Positions 1-58,119 of a stretch of DNA of 64,000 bases are shown here, one piece after another. The stretch covers positions 558,001-622,000 of the forward strand of contig CBFFRP010000363.1 in NCBI GenBank assembly GCA_965644295.1, read 5' to 3'. This DNA comes from Paraphysomonas bandaiensis (Eukaryota > Protista > Chrysophyceae). Positions within the stretch are counted from its first letter, which is position 1, and every line of letters begins with the position of its first letter. The notes under the pieces were generated by a model. That model saw only the letters and a program-made list of their open reading frames with translations, was not told the origin of the DNA and made no database searches. Position numbers and translations under genes: made by a program.

Positions 1-700
1 CTCGTACGCAGTTTCATCTCATTCGCAGTCTCGACAGTATGAAGTGAGTAGAAGGGATTTGATTGGCTGATTTGTTGGGACCGCATCACTTCACTTCATA
101 TTCACACACAGCAACTCCTCAAACATGCACTATGAATGGGTATATAAGACAGATACAGGCACCACTAGATGCTCTCTATGGTCGTGTTGCGGCGGGGATT
201 TATCTATGCTGTGTTCTACATACGACACAGCTGTATAGTGAGGGGAAATCGGACCATACTAAGCTACTATCTAACCACACCTACAACCACGAGCATACCT
301 ATGGAGGCGTAGCAGCATACCCATCACAAATGAAGGTGGCGGTAATGTGATGTGGTGTTATTTGTGCGGTATGGTTCATAGAGTTGATGCTTCCAGAGTA
401 CACTCCACAGATGCATGTCGAGAGTCGTACTGTATACATGCGTATACCACTGTATAGAAAATGAACGCTGTTCTAAAGTAACTGCCGTGTGTATATCAGT
501 ACACTACAACGTAGTACGTTCCTACAGCAGTGCTACGGGCTACAGAGCATCTGATGATACGCAATAATACTGCTATCAACGCACTGCCAATGCAGCAGTG
601 GGCCGGAGCATGCATAGAGTCCGGCATAAGCGACTGTGACAACAACAACTGAACACCTGCTCACTTTGCAGCTACATATTCGCTTATATCAACCTGTAAA

Positions 701-1162
701 ATGACGTCAGATGAAGAACAGGAGGTAGGTGTTAGTGGTGTATTACTCTCGTCCTCAGAACGTGCATCAGGTGCGATGGGAAGACCAGGAAAAAATCAAC
801 GAGTTTGGTAAACTAAATAACAGACTGATTGAATTACGGGCAGATATTAAACAGATCAAAGAAGACATAGAAAAACTAGATGATGCATCATCTGAAGTGA
901 TGATGGCAGCTGAACCAGAATTTATGGTACTGATGGGGGAAGCTTTTGTCGAGTGTGACGAAGACTTTATCACTGATTACTGCGAGAAGAAAACAGAGGT
1001 ATCAGAAAAGAGCATATATATTCCGTTTAATGCGTTGTGAAGATGCTAAATACAAGATTAGAGAGCTTAAATGAGGAAGAATCCTCGATTTTGGCCAGAC
1101 AAAAGGAGTTGAAAACTGAACTCTACTCGCGATTCGGAAGTTCCATCAATTTGGAGACATAA
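701..1162 (+). CDS. PFDN4: Prefoldin subunit 4 (3 exons: 701-724, 771-998, 1043-1162)
   Basis: Spliced product MTSDEEQE-VRWEDQEKINEFGKLN...LMGEAF...LKTELYSRFGSSINLET*; N- and C-terminal motifs typical of PFDN4/Gim3; GT-AG introns of 46 and 44 nt. Confidence 0.93.
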
Positions 1163-2931
1163 GTTGTTTTTTGTCCAATATGAATCTACCGCGCAGATTT
1201 CGTGTGATTTACACTCGAGTAACATAATTATCATAAGGCATCATAATGCTAGTAAATCGTTTTTGCTCTTAGATGTGTGAATAAGACTCGTAGTTATGAA
1301 ATCGAGGATATTGTAGACAAACGTAACAATAAAGCCTTCTAATGTTTACTTTGGTCTAAAGCAGAGCAAATACCTGGTCAAGGGGTTGAAAATCTAGTCA
1401 TTAAATGATTCATATTTTCAGTTTAGGTGCTTGTGGTATTCATAACCCTAACCCATTTTATGGATTTCTATATATCAGGTGATGACGTTATATTACGATA
1501 CCCCTTGGGTACATTTGCTATTGCCACTCCCGGTTGGAGTCAGTATCCTAAATAGTGATGTAAAGATTCTTCTCAAAAACGCATCGCCCTATACGTGTGG
1601 TATGATTTGTTATGCTGTATGATATGGTATACATTGTGCAATTGAAGAATGTTAGTATTGTGCAATACGTGAAACGAACTCATAGAAGAAAGAGTGAATA
1701 TAGTTAAGAAGGAAGTGGGGTTGAATAGACATTCTGTGTTTCTGCAATACATACTATATACTGTTGGCCCAATGACCAATATATTGCATTGTTAAAATAT
1801 AATCTTACATTTATTGCGAGATAATCAAATTAAGACTACATACACCTTAGCAATTTAGACTTTCCTCATACTCAATCTCTCATCCATCGTCAGTATCGTC
1901 GTCATCACCACGTTCTAACTTAATTGAAATATGTATAATGTATACATCTGGTCACAAATGTCGAATGGATTTCAGAAACAACATCATAAAGTGTAGCAGT
2001 ATTAGCTCAGATAAAAGTATTGCAAGTACAGACTGTATGACTCGTTCCCATGTGCTTAGATATATCAACTCTTCGTTTCTTGTTTTTCTGATATTGGGTA
2101 GGCATCAGAATTATATATAGCAATTATCCACAACACTATCAGATGTGTATACTCTTATATTTTTCATGCCCCATAGTAACTAAGTGTTCTACAATTTTCT
2201 CGCTGAACGCTGACGGCCCGCAAATGCCAATGTATTGGCACTCCTTCGTTCGAATATCACGCATGTCGATTGAATTATTTTCTCCGCATGGCCAATGTCA
2301 ACTTTATTGTCGACTTCATCATCAGTACTATGTCCTAACTTAAAACGCAAAGGCAAGCATTTGAGCAACTACACTGCTTTCGTTATCAATATTCTGTATC
2401 AGTGTCATAGAATTAAATACATGTTCTAATTGTCGTCTGTATCATATATAGTGCTATGTTTATGTTACTGCTTCAACCATGTGAGTTCACGATGTTGTGA
2501 TGATGGTGTCTGTTGTGTATGTCTAGATGTCGCTCGTTGTCTTTGATGTTCAGCATATCCGTATGGATATTCACCTCCTCTATTATTGGGGTAAAACGCA
2601 TGATATTATATTGACCTTTCTCCCGCTGTACACCGGTACACCAACACTCTTGCTGTACAAGGTACAAAGCGTATTGATGATGGGGTACACGGAAATCTAT
2701 ATCATCACACACAGTGGTGGTGGTGGTGGTGCTATGCGTATGCTGCACATACAGCTGTGTATACAGCAGGGGAGTGTATAGCACAAGTAGGAATTCCTAC
2801 TCTTATACCTTCCATGGTGTACGTACCATACCGTTTCCTGAGGCATGCGACATATATGCAGCAATAACACGAAGGAGCGCACAACTCGTGAACTACACAT
2901 ATAGTTAGGTGTTCCGCATCACAATTCTCTC

Positions 2932-44100: not shown

Positions 44101-47100
44101 AAGGTTGTTTACAATACTACACCCTGATACAAGTATCTCGCTGAGTAGTGGGAAATCATTGATGCCATTTTCAGATGATATGAGAACACCACCACCTATT
44201 CCTCCAGCCGTGTTGTTCCGAACAATACAGTTTAGTATAGAGACAGCAATATGAGCCATTCCAATGACTAAACCGCCACCATTCGCAAGAGCTCTATTAC
44301 CCTCCACAACCACCTGATCAGTAGGGCGATTAGGAAAAACACCATTATATGACCACAACAGTTTCGTTTAGTATACGTGCAGTGTAATAAATCTAAAAGT
44401 CATACGTTGATAATATCAGAAGGCAGACAACGGACCTGCTGTAAAGTAGTTCCCGTATTGGTACTTCGTAGATAGACTCCCCCTCCAGGACCACTCAAAG
44501 CCGTGTTGTTTCTAATGTGCGTGTTCACTATAATTCCAAACCTGCTATCACGATTTAGCATAATCCCTGCCCCTGTGAACACATCAACAATGTGCAGATG
44601 AAGTACAATGAGACTATACGTAAATGTGTTCGCGTTATACCTGAGTACCCAACGTTCTCTTCTATAACCGTACGTTTAGTAGGATACGACTCCGGAAACA
44701 CTGGAGTGATAGTAAATGTCGCCTCTATCCGGCTATCTGAGTAGTAAACAGCCACAGATGTAGAAGGAATATGCAATGCAGGATAGTTTATCCCTGGGAT
44801 ATTTGCATCATTGACAATAAAGTACAGCTCATTGTTAGCAATAAAGTATATGCTCTCGCTTGATTTCAATGTTACATCCGCATCAAATAAAACAATGAGC
44901 TCTGTTGAGCCATTTACCTCACCGGGTTCAAAATATATATCATCTCCATTCGTGTGCGTGACAACCACTGATTGATAGAACGCTTCACTGTCCGAAATAA
45001 GTAATTGCGAGCTGGAAGACGCGAAATAAAGTCCAGCACCCCAAGATGATGCCCGGTTTTCTTTAATATCACACCCTGCGATCACTGGACGGACAAGAGT
45101 GAAGGCGGTCAATGCACCACCGTAGCTGGCATAGTTTCCGTCAAAGAGGCACTCCACAATGTGGGAGTCCAAGTTGCCATCATACAAACAAACCCCACCA
45201 CCAGAGTACGCTGAGTTAGAGTAAAACTCACAGAACTTGATAGTTGTGTCCGCACCAGAAAGCCCTACAAATAAAGCGCCACCAACCACATCAGCCGTGC
45301 AGTCAACAAAAGTACAGTTCTCGATAAGCAATGACTCAGTATCGGTCCCACACGCCACACCACCCCCACCAGAAGCTGCAGAACATCGAGATAAGTATGA
45401 CCCTGCAACCACCCCACCAGCAACATTGTCAGCGAAGTAGATTCCTCCTCCAAAGTCACCCGCAGAGCAATTGTATATTTGACAGTCCATTATTTTTGGA
45501 GAGGCACTACTCGCCCCAATGTAAACAGCCCCCCCACTCGAAATCTCAGAGATACAAGAATCAAATATTGTGTTCACGATCGAGACCTCGTCTTGATCAT
45601 TTCCAATATACACTCCTCCACCTTCTGAATATGCAGTGCAACGAATGAAAGTGGAGTCAGATATACGAACACCGAGACTCCCTGAGGAAATATGCACACA
45701 GCCGCCTTGCCCAGAAGCATGGCAGTCGCTCATTGTCACGTTTAACAAAGACATCCCATCGTTATCAGCCTGGAAACCCACACATCCTCCATAGGATGAT
45801 ATACCCTCCCCTTCACATGACGTAAACACTGTATTCGAAATGACCATATGCCTGTTGTCATACCCCACGGATAGGCACCCATTGGACATGCCTGCTATCC
45901 CACGATACAAATACGAGTTGTCAATGGTAACATTGTGGTTCGACTGGTATACATACAACATCCCCCCCTTTCCACCTGCATCACATGATCTAAAAAACGT
46001 GCCTGAAATATAGAGTATGTTTCGTGTGCTTACGTAAATGGCTCCCCCATCCTGTCCTGAAGAACAGGACTCAAAATTCACATTATGTACAACAATATCA
46101 TTCTCTTCGTACACAAATACAGCTCCGCCATACTGACCGCATTCACAACGAAAAAATGATGACGTCATAAAAGCGATAGTGCTGTTTAGCATAACCATTA
46201 CGGCACCTCCAGAATCACCAGCTTCACAGCCAAAGAACACACTGTCACTGAAGGTAACATTAGCAACATTGTTGTCTACATATACTCCTCCACCGTCATA
46301 CGTAGCTTGGTTAGTATCGAAGACACAATAGTCACACCTCACTGTCTCTGTATTGTCAGTCAAGTATAGTGCACCCCCTCTATCAGCAAGGTTTGAATCA
46401 AATACTACATGAGAGAGATTCAAAGCACAGTTGCCGTCAAAATATAGAGCACCTCCAAAAGGCGCTTCAAACCCCCGCAAAGTCATATTCGACAACTCTA
46501 ATCGTGGCACAGAAATTAATTCAGAGGAAGATATGCTATGTTCTTCCGTATATGAGTAAGCTATAAATCGCAGATAAGGTTCCGCAACGGCTGTCTCAGA
46601 ATATGCGCCCACAATAGCCGAGCACGAAGTTGATGAGTAACAACCTACACGAAGACAAAGCTCTGAACAACCCTCCGTTGACACGCCGTATACTATCTCC
46701 GATACAACCCCACAGTAGTCATCATTGAACGCCACTTCAGTACCATTCTCGAACAATGAAAATACTGTATCTCCACTGGCAGAGGTTTGTGTATCTCCCG
46801 ACTGGTCACACGAAGTGAATTTAAATACCTCCCCATAGCAGCCTGTTAAGCATGCTTCAGCGTAATTAGTAGTTCCAAAGTCTGTGTCATCTAACACCCC
46901 TGTATCAAGCGGAAACTCCCCTCTAACTGGTTGTGAAGATAAACTTACAAAGCCTTCCCTTGTAACAACAGCACCATTCCCTGTGACAACGATATTGCAG
47001 TGGGGCTCAAGAGTGAGGTCGCCATACTCCGCGCTAAGCGATATATTCTCACTAACGGGAAGTCTTATAGTGCACTCGCCGGTCCCACACGCTTCCAGAC

Positions 47101-47254
47101 ACGACTCCCAGGCGGAGCGCAGGTTGCAGTGACCTGTGTTCGGGGAGCAGAGAGAGGAGTCTGGAGGGGAGTCCACAGAACTATCAACTATGAACTCCAC
47201 TGCACCACACACCACTAATGCTAAAGCTATCGACCAAACACGCAACATATGCAT
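41110..47254 (-). CDS. Large cell-surface protein: polymorphic-membrane-protein-like beta-helix repeats, Cys-rich GCC2/GCC3-like region, C-terminal multi-TM domain (exons about 47254-44641, 44572-44436, 44313-41110)
   Basis: Signal peptide; CNLRSA; many GGA(I/V)Y and FxxN repeats; C..CPKGQY; GYWR; LCAVCSSGY; LSFLWKAYRPQCWYFEIIETTRRLVLT TM module. Confidence 0.85.
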
Positions 47255-47554
47255 CAGGGACTCACAGCGAATCTCAGTACTTTAACATCACATGTACTGC
47301 TCACCTCTCTATAACTGCACTGTATCTACACGGTATCTATCTTACGGTACATTATCACAGCACACAGCACCAGAGAGCAGTGCATCGTATCATCCATATG
47401 GTGATGGGATGATTTCTTATGAACTGAGCGGATTATTCCATAGGCATTCCATCGCCCATACACTCCTGCAGTATATATAATACTACTACAGTGATTGAAT
47501 TTTATACATATCTACTACGTATTTTACGGCCTGTTCCGTAAAAGTCTGGCACTC

Positions 47555-47565
47555 CAGCCGAGTGG
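47555..47565 (+). promoter_or_regulatory. A-box-like Pol III element in the leader of the permuted tRNA
   Basis: CAGCCGAGTGG versus consensus TRGCNNAGYGG (one mismatch), 31 nt upstream of B box GGTTCGAATCC at 47597-47607. Confidence 0.6.
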
Positions 47566-47582
47566 GCAGATCAGTGGGAGTG

Positions 47583-47662
47583 AGCTGAAGATTCCGGGTT
47601 CGAATCCCGGGTAGGGTTTTCGTGTGCCCTGCTGGCCCAATGGATACGGCGTCAGCCTCCTA
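47583..47662 (+). tRNA. trnR-CCU: Circularly permuted tRNA-Arg(CCU): 3' half 47583-47618, linker 47619-47625, 5' half 47626-47662
   Basis: Rejoined halves give a full cloverleaf: acceptor GCCCUGC/GUAGGGU, D arm GCC..AAUGGAUA..GGC with A20, anticodon stem UCAGC/GCUGA with loop CU-CCU-AA, T arm CCGGG-UUCGAAU-CCCGG; flanks form a BHB motif at 37/38. Confidence 0.9.
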
Positions 47663-47670
47663 TCTAGCTA

Positions 47671-47679
47671 TTTTTTTTT
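47671..47679 (+). terminator. RNA polymerase III terminator (T9)
   Basis: Oligo-T run 8 nt after the end of the tRNA 5' half. Confidence 0.8.
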
Positions 47680-52406: not shown

Positions 52407-55400
52407 ATGGACGTTGACCGCCCCTTTGTTCTGGAGCTGGAAATAGACGATGAGATATCATTCAAGCCAGCATCAAAGAAGATCCGTGCATTACAGACTC
52501 TCGATTCTAATGCTCTACACTCTCCAGATAGACAACGACGTAATGGCAAACAAGAGCTCACTACTCCCACAAAAATGGCCGTAACTGATGTGGAGACGCC
52601 CCCAACCTGCAAAATTTCTCGGGAAAATAGGAGCCTCAGCAGTGAAACAACCCCAAGCCAAAGACTTGATGCGGATATAAACCCAGCTCCAACAGTTTCA
52701 ATTTCTAAAACAACAGCTAAACCAAAGGCTACCCCTTCGAGATTTTTGGCTAGCGCATACAAGAAGGCGATGCGTTTAGTCTCCACTCCATCTAGAAAAG
52801 ACTCTGTTAAAAACCAATGTTCCAGCCATTCCACCACACACCGGGATGAGGAGAATGCACTAACTGCTCAAGCACCCACTATTTCTATTGATGAGAGTAC
52901 GGCTTTAAAGGATACTAAAGCTGAGCATGTGTCTGACTACTTTATTAATACCACCTTATTCTCTGAAACCTGCTGTGCTGACATATCAATGTCTAATGTA
53001 AACCCAACAACAGGCCGAAACATTGAGAAGGCTTCACTTTCTAAAGATACTGACAGCACCAACGAAACTAAGCAGAATAATGTCATAACAACAGAAGCAT
53101 TACATTCTAACGTTGAAGTAGCGGTGTATGCATTTCCAGAGCTCGAGGCAATCATACCGAAAGAAAATATCAACGATCCTGTTCCCCGTGAGGATGACTA
53201 CTACAAAGAGGTCGTGGTAATCGAGTCATGTGCTGCAGATAAAATAAACAGTGCAATTACTACTGATATCATTGAGGTCTCAGAGGCTGTTAGTCATGAA
53301 GCTGAGCTGACCAATGAAACAATCACCGATGAGACTGAGAAAGTGAGTACTGTGACTGCTTGTGAAGATGCTGAGTCAATGAATGTGACTGCGGAAGCAG
53401 CACCAGAGGTCGTTGCAACTGAGACTGTTATTGAGGTTTCTGAGGCTGCTAGTCATGAAGCTGAGCTGACCAATGACACAATCACCGTTGAGACTGAGAA
53501 AGTGAATACTGTGACTGCTTGTGAAGATGCTGAGTCAATGAATGTGACTGTGGAAGCAGCACCAGAGGTCGTTGCAACTGAGACTGTTATCGAGGTTTCA
53601 GAGGCTGTTAGTCATGAAGCTGAGCTGACCAATGACAAAATCACCGATGAGACTGAGAAAGTGAATACTGTGACTGCTTGTGAAGATGCTGAGTCAATGA
53701 ATGTGACTGTGGAAGCAGCACCAGAGGTCGTTGCAACTGAGACTGTTATCGAGGTTTCAGAGGCTGTTAGTCATGAAGCTGAGCTGACCAATGACACAAT
53801 CACCGATGAGACTGAGAAAGTGAATACTGTGACTGCTTGTGAAGATGCTGAGTCAATGAATGTGACTGTGGAAGCAGCACCAGAGGTCGTTGCAACTGAG
53901 ACTGTTATTGAGGTTTCTGAGGCTGTTAGTCATGAAGCTGAGCTGACCAATGACACAATCACCGTTGAGACTGAGAAAGTGAGTACTGTGACTGCTTGTG
54001 AAGATGCTGAGTCAATGAATGTGACTGTGGAAGCAGCACCAGAGGTCGTTGCAACTGAGACTGTTATCGAGGTTTCAGAGGCTGTTAGTCATGAAGCTGA
54101 GCTGACCAATGACACAATCACCGATGAGACTGAGAAAGTGAATACTGTGACTGCTTGTGAAGATGCTGAGTCAATGAATGTGACTGTGGAAGCAGCACCA
54201 GAGGTCGTTGCAACTGAGACTGTTATCGAGGTTTCTGAGGCTGCTAGTCATGAAGCTGAGCTGACCAATGACATAATCACCGATGAGACTGAGAAAGTGA
54301 ATACTGTGACTGCTTGTGAAGATGCTGAGTCAATGAATGTGACTGTGGAAGCAGCACCAGAGGTCGTTGCAACTGAGACTGTTATCGAGGTTTCTGAGGC
54401 TGTTAGTCATGAAGCTGAGCTGACCAATGACACAATCACCGATGAGACTGAGAAAGTGAATACTGTGACTGCTTGTGAAGATGCTGAGTCAATGAATGTG
54501 ACTGTGGAAGCAGCACCAGAGGTCGTTGCAACTGAGACTGTTATCGAGGTTTCTGAGGCTGTTAGTCATGAAGCTGAGCTGACCAATGACACAATCACCG
54601 TTGAGACTGAGAAAGTGAATACTGTGACTGCTTGTGAAGATGCTGAGTCAATGAATGTGACTGTGGAAGCAGCACCAGAGGTCGTTGCAACTGAGACTGT
54701 TATCGAGGTTTCTGAGGCTGTTAGTCATGAAGCTGAGCTGACCAATGACACAATCACCGATGAGACTGAGAAAGTGAATACTGTGACTGCTTGTGAAGAT
54801 ACTGAGTCAATGAATGTGACTGTGGAAGCAGCACCAGAGGTCGTTGCAACTGAGACTGTTATCGAGGTTTCAGAGGCTGTTAGTCATGAAGCTGAGCTGA
54901 CCAATGACACAATCACCGTTGAGACTGAGAAAGTGAATACTGTGACTGCTTGTGAAGATGCTGAGTCAATGAATGTGACTGTGGAAGCAGCACCAGAGGT
55001 CGTTGCAACTGAGACTGTTATCGAGGTTTCTGAGGCTGTTAGTCATGAAGCTGAGCTGACCAATGACACAATCACCGTTGAGACTGAGAAAGTGAATACT
55101 GTGACTGCTTGTGAAGATACTGAGTCAATGAATGTGACTGTGGAAGCAGCACCAGAGGTCGTTGCAACTGAGACTGTTATCGAGGTTTCAGAGGCTGTTA
55201 GTCATGAAGCTGAGCTGACCAATGACACAATCACCGTTGAGACTGAGAAAGTGAATACTGTGACTGCTTGTGAAGATGCTGAGTCAATGAATGTGACTGT
55301 GGAAGCAGCACCAGAGGTCGTTGCAACTGAGACTGTTATTGAGGTTTCAGAGGCTGTTAGTCATGAAGCTGAGCTGACCAATGGCATAATCACCGATGAG

Positions 55401-58119
55401 ACTGAGAAAGTGAATACTGTGACTGCTTGTGAAGATGCTGAGTCAATGAATGTGACTGTGGAAGCAGCACCAGAGGTCGTTGCAACTGAGACTGTTATCG
55501 AGGTTTCAGAGGCTGTTAGTCATGAAGCTGAGCTGACCAATGACACAATCACCGTTGAGACTGAGAAAGTGAATACTGTGACTGCTTGTGAAGATGCTGA
55601 GTCAATGAATGTGACTGTGGAAGCAGCACCAGAGGTCGTTGCAACTGAGACTGTTATCGAGGTTTCTGAGGCTGTTAGTCATGAAGCTGAGCTGACCAAT
55701 GACACAATCACCGTTGAGACTGAGAAAGTGAATACTGTGACTGCTTGTGAAGATGCTGAGTCAATGAATGTGACTGCGGAAGCAGCACCAGAGGTCGTTG
55801 CAACTGAGACTGTTATCGAGGTTTCAGAGGCTGTTAGTCATGAAGCTGAGCTGACCAATGACACAATCACCGATGAGACTGAGAAAGTGAATACTGTGAC
55901 TGCTTGTGAAGATACTGAGTCAATGAATGTGACTGTGGAAGCAGCACCAGAGGTCGTTGCAACTGAGACTGTTATCGAGGTTTCAGAGGCTGTTAGTCAT
56001 GAAGCTGAGCTGACCAATGACACAATCACCGTTGAGACTGAGAAAGTGAATACTGTGACTGCTTGTGAAGATGCTGAGTCAATGAATGTGACTGTGGAAG
56101 CAGCACCAGAGGTCGTTGCAACTGAGACTGTTATTGAGGTTTCAGAGGCTGTTAGTCATGAAGCTGAGCTGACCAATGGCATAATCACCGATGAGACTGA
56201 GAAAGTGAATACTGTGACTGCTTGTGAAGATGCTGAGTCAATGAATGTGACTGTGGAAGCAGCACCAGAGGTCGTTGCAACTGAGACTGTTATTGAGGTT
56301 TCAGAGGCTGCTAGTCATGAAGCTGAGCTGACCAATGACACAATCACCGTTGAGACTGAGAAAGTGAATACTGTGACTGCTTGTGAAGATGCTGAGTCAA
56401 TGAATGTGACTGCGGAAGCAGCACCAGAGGTCGTTGCAACTGAGACTGTTATCGAGGTTTCTGAGGCTGTTAGTCATGAAGCTGAGCTGACCAATGACAT
56501 AATCACCGATGAGACTGAGAAAGTGAGTACTGTGACTGCTTGTGAAGATGCTGAGTCAATGAATGTGACTGCGGAAGCAGCACCAGAGGTCGTTGCAACT
56601 GAGACTGTTATTGAGGTTTCAGAGGCTGTTAGTCATGAAGCTGAGCTGACCAATGACACAATCACCGATGAGACTGAGAATGATGTTTATCAAAGTGTTG
56701 CATCTTCTAAACTATGTGACGATTTTAGTTGTTTTGAATCTGTTGGAATTACTAGTTGTGTTCCTGAGATTTCAATGTCTGGATCTGACTGCAGTAATCT
56801 GCGCAGAATATCAGATGGTCTTTCCTGTCATGATGAGTATCTTGAAGCATTACACATGCCAAAATATTCACAAGCAGAAGTTGATGCCCTGAGAGCTGAT
56901 TGGGTGCGAGAGATGGAGAATAATATTGCCCAGATGAATAAAAGCACACATGAAGAAATGGATGATAAGATTTGTACGTTGCAGATGAAATGCGTCTCTC
57001 TTGAAGAAGAGAAAACGTCACTTTTGGCTGAGTTATCAGCGCAACAAGAATCCCATAATGCTTACGTCCAGGTGTCAGAGCTAAAACTTTGCGACTTGAA
57101 TCGTAAGCTTCAGGTATTTCATGAAATTTTATTGTTGGGGTGAAGTAGTAACATTTCTGTTTTTATAGAATGCTGTGAATGAAGTTGTTTCTATGAAAGT
57201 TTCTCATTCTAATGAACTCGACACCGTGAAAGCCTCTTATACAAAGCGTCTCAACGACATGTTTCAATCTCAAGGAGAATCTCTCAATGATATGCGGGTG
57301 AAGCTCTCAAATGAACTGACAGAAAAATATGAAACTCAACTACAAAATGAAAGAGCGGTATCAGAAAAACTAAGGCAAGACCTCAAAAATGCTACTGAAG
57401 TCGCTGCTACACTTCGAGATCAGATAGAGTCTGCTGTAGCTGATGCTAAGCGCAAAGTATATGAAAAAGCTAAAGTGCAGTTCGAGGAAGGCAACAAACG
57501 GTTTCTCATGATCAAAACTCAGTTGACAGATGCAAAAGTTGAGATTGATAGAGCCCATGGAAAAATTGAAATTCTCCAGAAAAACATACGTGATATGACT
57601 TCACAACTAGAAGAATCTCGTAAAAATGAAGACTCTATTCGAGGATCAATGCAAAAAATTGATACGGCACTGAAGAATCTTGTTGAAGCAGGGGGCGTAG
57701 TTTATCCATTGGAAGGTACTAGAGAAGAAAAAATGGCAGCTATTAAGAATACAGTTGATACGAAAGAGAGTCATATTAAAGCTCTTTCTGAAAAAATTGA
57801 GGCATTTCAAAAAGAAGTATCCGATTTAAATCAGACTATTTTGGTTAAAACAAAAAGCTTTGAACAACTACAGCGTGAGAGAGACTCATGTATTGATGAG
57901 TTGTCTGATGCAAAGAAGGCAGCTGCTACTCACATGGAAGCTGTTGAGTCTATGACAGCCGAAAGAGAGGCTCGTACAGTATACATTGCTGACTTACTCA
58001 AAGTCAAAACTGAGTTGGAGAGCGAAATTTTATGCCTAAAGGAAGAGAATGCTCATATCAGCAGAAACGCAGAGGAAGCTGTAGCTCTACTTGAGAAGCA
58101 CTTTCTTTCACAAACATAG
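52407..58119 (+). CDS. Large acidic repeat protein with C-terminal coiled coil, possibly TACC-like (intron 57114-57168)
   Basis: 1578-aa ORF spliced in frame to a 314-aa coiled-coil ORF; KYSQAEVD and terminal KEENAHISRNAEEAVALLEK resemble TACC domain ends; several S/T-P sites in the N-terminus. Confidence 0.7.
53271..56680 (+). repeat. Coding tandem array, 159-bp (53-aa) unit, about 21.4 copies
   Basis: Unit IEVSEAVSHEAELTNDTITDETEKVNTVTACEDAESMNVTVEAAPEVVATETV; period measured 53287 to 53446. Confidence 0.98.

Follow-up and report, generated by a model that had tools for sequence, protein, structure and literature searches.

We report a circularly permuted tRNA-Arg(CCU) gene of type II (junction 37/38), in which the 3' half precedes the 5' half and the leader carries an A-box-like motif upstream of the B box. 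The most far-reaching reading, to which we assign a probability of roughly 0.4, is that such genes form an old family in marine stramenopile-like protists, in which the D-arm segment of an upstream 5' half that otherwise decayed would have been retained as a surrogate A block, so that TFIIIC would still see an A-then-B promoter, while the RNA copy of this segment would be neutralised in a hairpin. The window, that is, the whole 64,000-nt stretch of DNA analysed here, is part of contig C363 of a eukaryotic assembly of 62.5 Mb (669 contigs, ~43% G+C).

Architecture of the permuted gene and its leader

The features of the locus, together with the corresponding leader motifs of three metagenomic genes discussed below, are collected in Table 1. 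The 3' half comprises the 3' strand of the anticodon stem, the variable loop, the T arm, the 3' strand of the acceptor stem and the discriminator, and the 5' half comprises the 5' strand of the acceptor stem, the D arm, the 5' strand of the anticodon stem and the anticodon CCT. The acceptor strands pair across the linker at 7/7 positions, two G-U pairs among them, and the T arm, acceptor stem, D arm and anticodon stem are all present in the MFE fold of the precursor. In the same fold, a 3-nt bulge separates the anticodon stem from the leader strand that pairs with the anticodon loop, so that the 37/38 junction is BHB-like; neither a second bulge nor an outer helix is evident in the MFE folds of the two copies of the gene found in this assembly. 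The run of nine T residues is the expected Pol III terminator, the T-run terminators of normal tRNA genes in this genome ranging from T5 to T11. A further run, T4 at 47617-47620, made up of T72, T73 and two bases of the linker, sits midway along the transcription unit and could give partial Pol III termination; the same mid-gene run is found in the gene on metagenomic contig L063 and is missing from the second copy in the assembly.

Table 1. Features of the permuted tRNA-Arg(CCU) locus in the window and the leader motifs of three metagenomic genes (positions of the latter refer to their own contigs)
Feature	Sequence	Position	Strand	Basis or remark
TATA-like element	TTTATACATA	47501-47510	+	TTTATAC starts 54 nt before the leader motif
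Leader hairpin containing the A-box-like motif		47544-47571	+	MFE folds
A-box-like motif, candidate surrogate A block	CAGCCGAGTGG	47555-47565	+	One mismatch to TRGCNNAGTGG
Second A-box-like string	CAGATCAGTGG	47567-47577	+	8.4 bits; 30 nt before the B box
Leader strand pairing with the anticodon loop	GUGGGAGUG	47574-47582	+	MFE folds, both copies
tRNA 3' half, positions 38-73		47583-47618	+	Direct reading, fold
B box	GGTTCGAATCC	47597-47607	+	Exact match to GGTTCGANTCC, the single exact one in the window
Intervening linker, 7 nt, closes the acceptor stem		47619-47625	+	Fold
tRNA 5' half, positions 1-37		47626-47662	+	Direct reading, fold
The tRNA's own A box, displaced 3' of the B box	TGGCCCAATGG	47633-47643	+	Direct reading
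Short trailer, 8 nt		47663-47670	+	Direct reading
T9 run, expected Pol III terminator		47671-47679	+	Direct reading
Leader motif, L063	TGGCTCAATTG	946-956	-	44 nt before B box start; 10.2 bits; p 0.0026 (shuffled leaders)
Leader motif, L082	TAGCTTAACCG	1479-1489		43 nt before B box start; 7.5 bits; p 0.0072 (shuffled leaders)
Leader motif, L095	TAGCTGAAAGG	967-977		42 nt before B box start; 8.3 bits; p 0.0074 (shuffled leaders)

Neither ARAGORN nor Rfam at gathering thresholds yielded a match anywhere in the window, and the tRNA halves were inspected separately as well as within the precursor fold. The top permissive Rfam match, to YrlA (bacterial Y RNA-like; 47563-47677, 19.4 bits, E 0.08), was rejected as a non-member, the gathering score of that family being 69; it arises because the tRNA-like module of YrlA has the same permuted order of T arm, acceptor and D arm.

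Two adjacent large ORFs related to right-handed beta-helix proteins lie upstream of the gene on the minus strand: that at 41110-44358 matches the Pfam Beta_helix family, and its 899-aa neighbour at 44555-47254 has distant beta-helix relatives only, the best of them with 29% identity. For the 1578-aa ORF at 52407-57143 (plus strand), a word-based search returned no relative at E 1e-10, and an assessment of synteny by neighbouring genes found no usable relatives of the window ORFs.

The original prediction held that, with the tRNA's own A box displaced 3' of the B box, the leader supplies a surrogate A box that restores the A-then-B order of a type 2 Pol III promoter. The elements on which this proposal was built were confirmed by direct reading: the displaced A box, the AT-rich string upstream, and the leader motif with its single mismatch and its gap of 31 nt to the B box. 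Measured from start to start, motif and B box are 42 nt apart, compared with 43-45 nt from A start to B start in the normal class I tRNA genes of this genome. The mismatch is a C for T at the equivalent of position 8, a T that is invariant in the 16 real A boxes, taken from nuclear tRNA genes of the genome, from which our A-box weight matrix was constructed. On this matrix, the leader motif scores 8.2 bits and the real A boxes score 10.5-18.2 bits.

The motif as such is not enriched, given that the window contains 22 strings with at most one mismatch to TRGCNNAGTGG, where 21.8 are expected (~1.7e-4 per position and strand). We then considered 8 offsets, 40-47 nt before the start of the B box, a range chosen with the data already in view. 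At the level of the locus, an equal or better score arises among these offsets with a probability of 0.004 when judged by the genomic background and 0.009 when judged by shuffled leaders. Thus, at this single locus, the motif is mildly unlikely by chance, which is suggestive but weak for an after-the-fact observation. The second A-box-like string starts 12 nt 3' of the first motif and, with the base that follows it, matches that motif at 9/12 positions. It overlaps the leader strand complementary to the anticodon loop, and its AGTGGG is partly imposed by this pairing, so that some of the A-box likeness at this locus may be incidental.

A DNA search of the assembly identified one further copy of the gene (contig C357, locus L032, minus strand). 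Its mature halves are identical to those in the window (3' half 36/36, 5' half 37/37) and its linker differs; given the identity of the mature halves, this copy is presumably functional too. The two leaders agree at 22/37 positions, mostly in the blocks CCAGCCG and TGGGAGT, the latter being the strand that pairs with the anticodon loop. In the C357 leader, the A-box-like motif is degraded to CAGCCGGGATG: CCAGCCG is kept, the AGTGG part reads GGATG, and the score falls to -6.2 bits. A genome-wide pattern for permuted tRNA genes found only the two Arg(CCU) copies, so that the conservation across other permuted tRNAs of the genome that had been anticipated could be judged on this single paralog, where it fails. 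The combination of the D arm with a CCT anticodon likewise occurs in the genome only at these two loci, and the permuted gene appears to be the organism's only source of one arginine tRNA. A permuted-gene candidate on contig C256 proved not to be a tRNA. The enoyl-CoA hydratase encoded beside the C357 copy has one close relative, known from a transcriptome only (Paraphysomonas, 82% identical).

The motif in distant lineages

Metagenomes were scanned with a pattern that calls for a B box followed within 18-48 nt by an Arg-type D arm and constrains nothing 5' of the B box. Most of the 120 matches were closely spaced tandem tRNA genes rather than permuted ones and were set aside. Many of the marine contigs among loci L033-L152 carry different tRNA genes 3-45 nt apart, for example, Tyr-Arg, Ser-Arg and Pro-Arg pairs with introns, which probably represent polycistronic arrays from picoeukaryotes or giant viruses. 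Permuted tRNA-Arg(CCU) genes proper, recognised by a T run after the 5' half and the lack of a downstream 3' half, were found on five contigs: L063, L082, L095, and L062 and L123, the last two being variants of one taxon. These contigs are eukaryotic; on L082, for instance, proteins resembling SLX1 and lipin are encoded. A scan of prokaryotic genomes for the permuted Arg(CCU) arrangement gave no match. An exact-protein look-up with the neighbour of the L082 gene returned the same contig only.

A different permuted gene, apparently for tRNA-Arg(ACG) with the junction near 26/27, is present on the minus strand of metagenomic contig L129. It has an apparent 29-nt intron just 5' of the B box (~726-776 of the reverse strand) and resembles the multiply disrupted genes of red algae.

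The mature halves of the metagenomic Arg(CCU) genes are 72-92% identical to those in the window (26-31/36 positions for the 3' half), and the proteins of L082 and L095 are 39-61% identical to those of the window genome. The leaders agree with the window leader at 5-15/37 positions, which is the random level. In L063, L082 and L095, an A-box-like motif is nonetheless found close to the spacing seen in the window (Table 1), and in each of them it has the top A-box score in the whole range of 20-74 nt. The positions common to the four motifs are those of the A-box consensus (R9, G10, C11, A14, R15 and the final G), and the free positions vary. L062/L123 have no A-box-like motif at the canonical distance (p 0.40). 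The Fisher combined p for the four out-of-sample lineages is 5e-5; with 31 offsets rather than 8, a hand estimate gives ~0.002. All good leader motifs, in the window and in the metagenomes, score 7.5-10.2 bits, under the weakest real A box (10.5 bits). The expectation that the leader A box would be conserved in relatives thus held for three of the four distant lineages, at 42-44 nt, and did not hold for L062/L123.

This recurrence bears on the view that a short degenerate consensus was picked post hoc out of a 40-nt leader by pure coincidence. The near-equality of observed and expected counts in the window, the locus-level p of 0.004-0.009 and the second copy without the motif would all be in keeping with coincidence. 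However, the appearance of the motif at the same offset in 3/4 independent lineages, as the best score of the 20-74 nt range in each and with the combined p given above, makes this a very improbable account.

The leader also bears on the origin of the gene. Its length equals that of the 5' half, with 35 nt from the equivalent of 'position 1' to position 38. When the L063 leader is compared with the 5' half of the same gene, 9/12 positions match at 8-19 and 4/7 at 20-26 (13/19 over the D arm); of the acceptor and anticodon parts, nothing is left. The length of the leader and the D-arm match in L063 fit the tandem-duplication model and are also compatible with selective retention of a promoter segment. 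An unusual base in the D stem, within ATACGGC, is common to 4/5 lineages, that of the window included, and so points to a single ancient origin instead of several recent ones.

These similarities raise the possibility that the motif is a non-functional fossil of an upstream 5' half left behind by the tandem duplication, and that the promoter consists of the TATA-like element alone and is independent of TFIIIC, the mode of transcription proposed for the red alga. Tandem duplication is the standard model for the origin of permuted genes (PMC3978253), and the length of the leader and the D-arm similarity in L063 are what such a fossil would leave. Moreover, TATA-like elements are nearly universal 5' of the tRNA genes in this genome (see below), and both C357 and L062/L123 manage without a good motif. 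A neutral relic should, however, have decayed like the rest of the leader, which is down to 5-15/37 common positions in lineages whose proteins are only 39-61% identical. With the leaders otherwise randomised and the lineages this far apart, neutral retention of the motif is unlikely, and the common D-stem base, which points to a single old origin, likewise counts against a fossil, as do the TFIIIC domains described below against a promoter made of the TATA-like element alone. On balance, we regard the fossil as a distinctly unlikely explanation. In L062/L123, the leader is shorter and has a TATA-like run ~40-50 nt 5' of position 38; this gene could represent a naturally occurring TATA-only form.

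A hairpin around the motif

In the MFE folds, the A-box-like motif of the window is contained in a leader hairpin composed of an outer stem GUCUG/CAGAU, an inner stem CACUC/GAGUG and a loop CAGCC. Over 36 nt, its energy is -11.3 kcal/mol, compared with -6.7 kcal/mol for shuffled sequences (p 0.034) and a mean of -2.5 kcal/mol for the 5' regions of normal tRNA genes. Between the window and C357, two inner pairs are substituted on both strands and still pair (C-G to A-U and U-A to C-G), one inner pair is lost, and the outer stem of C357 gains a U-A pair; these pairs were counted by hand, the MAFFT alignment mis-registering the 3' strand of the outer stem. In the hairpins of L063, L082 and L095, G10-C11 lie in the stem and A14-A15 in the loop, as in a shortened D arm, and the most stable register in the window differs from this. 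Whether the strand that pairs with the motif lies upstream or downstream of it depends on the lineage, as if the motif were the fixed part and the hairpin had been built around it. The interpretation of the CAGCC loop as a relic of an anticodon-stem strand, or as a partner of the 3' half, was dropped, since it is absent from the other lineages.

Because the motif always lies within a hairpin, selection at the RNA level is a live rival. The conserved element could be an RNA hairpin derived from the D arm that serves the folding or processing of the permuted precursor, for example, by shielding the true 5' half from the leader or by presenting the junction to the splicing endonuclease; transcription would then be set by the upstream TATA-like element and the B box, and the likeness to an A box would be baggage kept by the stem. 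In the window, C357, L063, L082 and L095, the motif falls within a hairpin of 10-15 bp (p 0.02-0.12 each against shuffles), and L062/L123 lack both the hairpin and the motif. The comparison of the two copies within the genome favours the hairpin over the A box, as far as two leader sequences can tell: the hairpin survives between them while the 3' part of the A box is lost, and all six changed positions of the inner stem fall into three pairs. This compensatory pattern comes from two sequences and is statistically weak (~0.02-0.05 by hand calculation). Furthermore, the need for a hairpin alone predicts no A-box consensus bases, yet the loops of L063, L082 and L095 hold A14 and R15. The scores of the motif are also significant when these leaders are compared with their own shuffled versions, and the register of the motif relative to the stem varies among lineages. 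We know of no processing factor that needs such a hairpin. We consider a purely RNA-level role unlikely, though deserving of serious attention.

Candidate promoter elements and the proposed route of transcription

We collected 58 normal nuclear tRNA genes with their flanks (among loci L003-L030 and L155-L174). Of these, 51 have a heptamer of the TTTATAT type on their 5' side, with a median distance of 47 nt to the start of the A box (IQR 43-59); for the nearest TATA-like heptamer, this distance spans 21-103 nt and is mostly ~39-72 nt. In the C357 copy, the TATA-like TTTATATTA, the stronger TATA of the two permuted copies, starts 53 nt before the degraded motif. This distance and the 54 nt in the window fall within the normal range, so that both permuted copies have a normal TATA-A-B geometry when measured from the leader motif. 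TATA-assisted tRNA gene promoters exist in fission yeast and plants (cited in PMC3978253). The genome studied here resembles them in having a TATA-like element tens of nucleotides 5' of nearly all tRNA genes, and differs in that the distance from the candidate TATA to the gene is quite variable.

Two further features of tRNA genes in the assembly were observed. Five copies of tRNA-Phe(GAA) share a block of ~30 nt directly 5' of the gene, possibly a long common leader; four of these blocks are nearly identical and the fifth has diverged. Contig C669 (L001, L002, L006 and other loci) is AT-rich, carries dense clusters of tRNA genes 5-20 nt apart, and is presumably the mitochondrial genome.

For permuted genes, inverted A and B boxes have been considered unsuitable for TFIIIC, with an upstream TATA-like sequence as the probable promoter, and the box-binding subunits of TFIIIC are reported as not identified in the red alga (Soma 2014 review, PMC3978253). 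That review mentions no A-box-like element in leaders, and a 2026 review (PMC13578239) adds none. The genome studied here departs from the red algal situation in that domains of both box-binding sides were found. When the genome was searched with Pfam profiles, Tau95 (PF09734), on the A-block side of TFIIIC, scored 36.2 bits at a cut-off of 23.7, and B-block_TFIIIC (PF04182) scored 25 bits at a cut-off of 22, a marginal match to a family that also matches in prokaryotic controls. The original prediction had set the leader A box against the TATA-dependent model of red algal genes. This contrast was drawn too sharply: a TATA-like element lies 5' of most normal genes as well as of both permuted copies, so that the TATA-like element and a surrogate A box would act together rather than as alternatives.

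The leader would then be the remnant of a tRNA 5' half, of which the D-arm/A-box segment was kept and acts with the TATA-like element and the B box as promoter. Judging from the sequences compared, we put this at just short of even odds. The locus would present the normal TATA-A-B order to the Pol III machinery. TFIIIC would bind the strong B box and the weak A block of the leader and place TFIIIB over the TATA-like element, and Pol III would start at ~47527-47540 (candidate start). The original prediction placed the start near 47535-47548; the TATA-like element lies ~30 nt upstream of this, a compatible geometry. The leader, 3' half, linker and 5' half would be transcribed up to a stop at the T9 run. 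Maturation would follow the course described for the permuted tRNAs of algae, with leader and trailer removed at the 37/38 junction and the resulting ends ligated; the A-like RNA segment would be folded away in the leader hairpin. TFIIIC binding, the start site and the dependence of expression on the motif are what we infer within this scheme.

The proposed restoration of A-then-B order by a surrogate A box is thus supported in part, by the recurrence of motif and spacing in three of four distant lineages and by the TFIIIC domains encoded in the genome, and it is weakened by the C357 copy and by L062/L123. The degraded motif of the former and the lack of one in the latter imply that the box is not indispensable.

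Compared with an ordinary type 2 Pol III promoter, the locus has, if the leader motif is taken as a candidate A block, the same A-then-B order and a similar spacing (42 versus 43-45 nt), together with an exact B box, a T-run terminator and TFIIIC domains encoded in the genome. It differs in its A block, which belongs to the discarded leader, departs from the consensus at T8 and has a lower score than any real A box, and in that the real A box lies 3' of the B box.

Among eukaryotes, permuted tRNA genes are listed only for red algae, green algae and a nucleomorph, besides those of some archaea (PMC13578239), and a type II Arg(CCT) gene is absent from the published table of permuted genes (PMC3978253). 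With the permuted genes of Cyanidioschyzon merolae, prasinophytes and the Bigelowiella nucleomorph, the present gene shares the leading 3' half, the short linker, the 37/38 junction, the upstream TATA-like element and the downstream T stretch. Unlike these, it appears, judging from the one Paraphysomonas match, to belong to a colourless chrysophyte-like stramenopile, and TFIIIC domains are encoded in its genome. The Cys(GCA) gene of Ostreococcus lucimarinus has an extra 5' half downstream, which has been interpreted as an intermediate (PMC3978253). In line with that case and with the tandem-duplication model, the leader described here equals a 5' half in length and contains a D-arm-like remnant, as if an upstream outer half had decayed. 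In contrast to O. lucimarinus, the remnant lies upstream, its A-box segment is retained across distant lineages, and a promoter role is proposed for it.

Ever since permuted tRNA genes were discovered, it has been asked how they are transcribed, and the TATA answer was drawn mainly from one red alga (PMC3978253). The protist gene contrasts with the situation in that alga in three respects: TFIIIC domains are present, the gene is apparently the sole source of one arginine tRNA, and an A-box-like block recurs at canonical spacing. The case ties the promoter problem to the tandem-duplication origin of permuted genes. If the far-reaching reading given at the outset is true, permuted tRNA genes can rebuild an internal promoter from the very duplication that gave rise to them, and the escape from it that has been assumed since 2007 is not needed.
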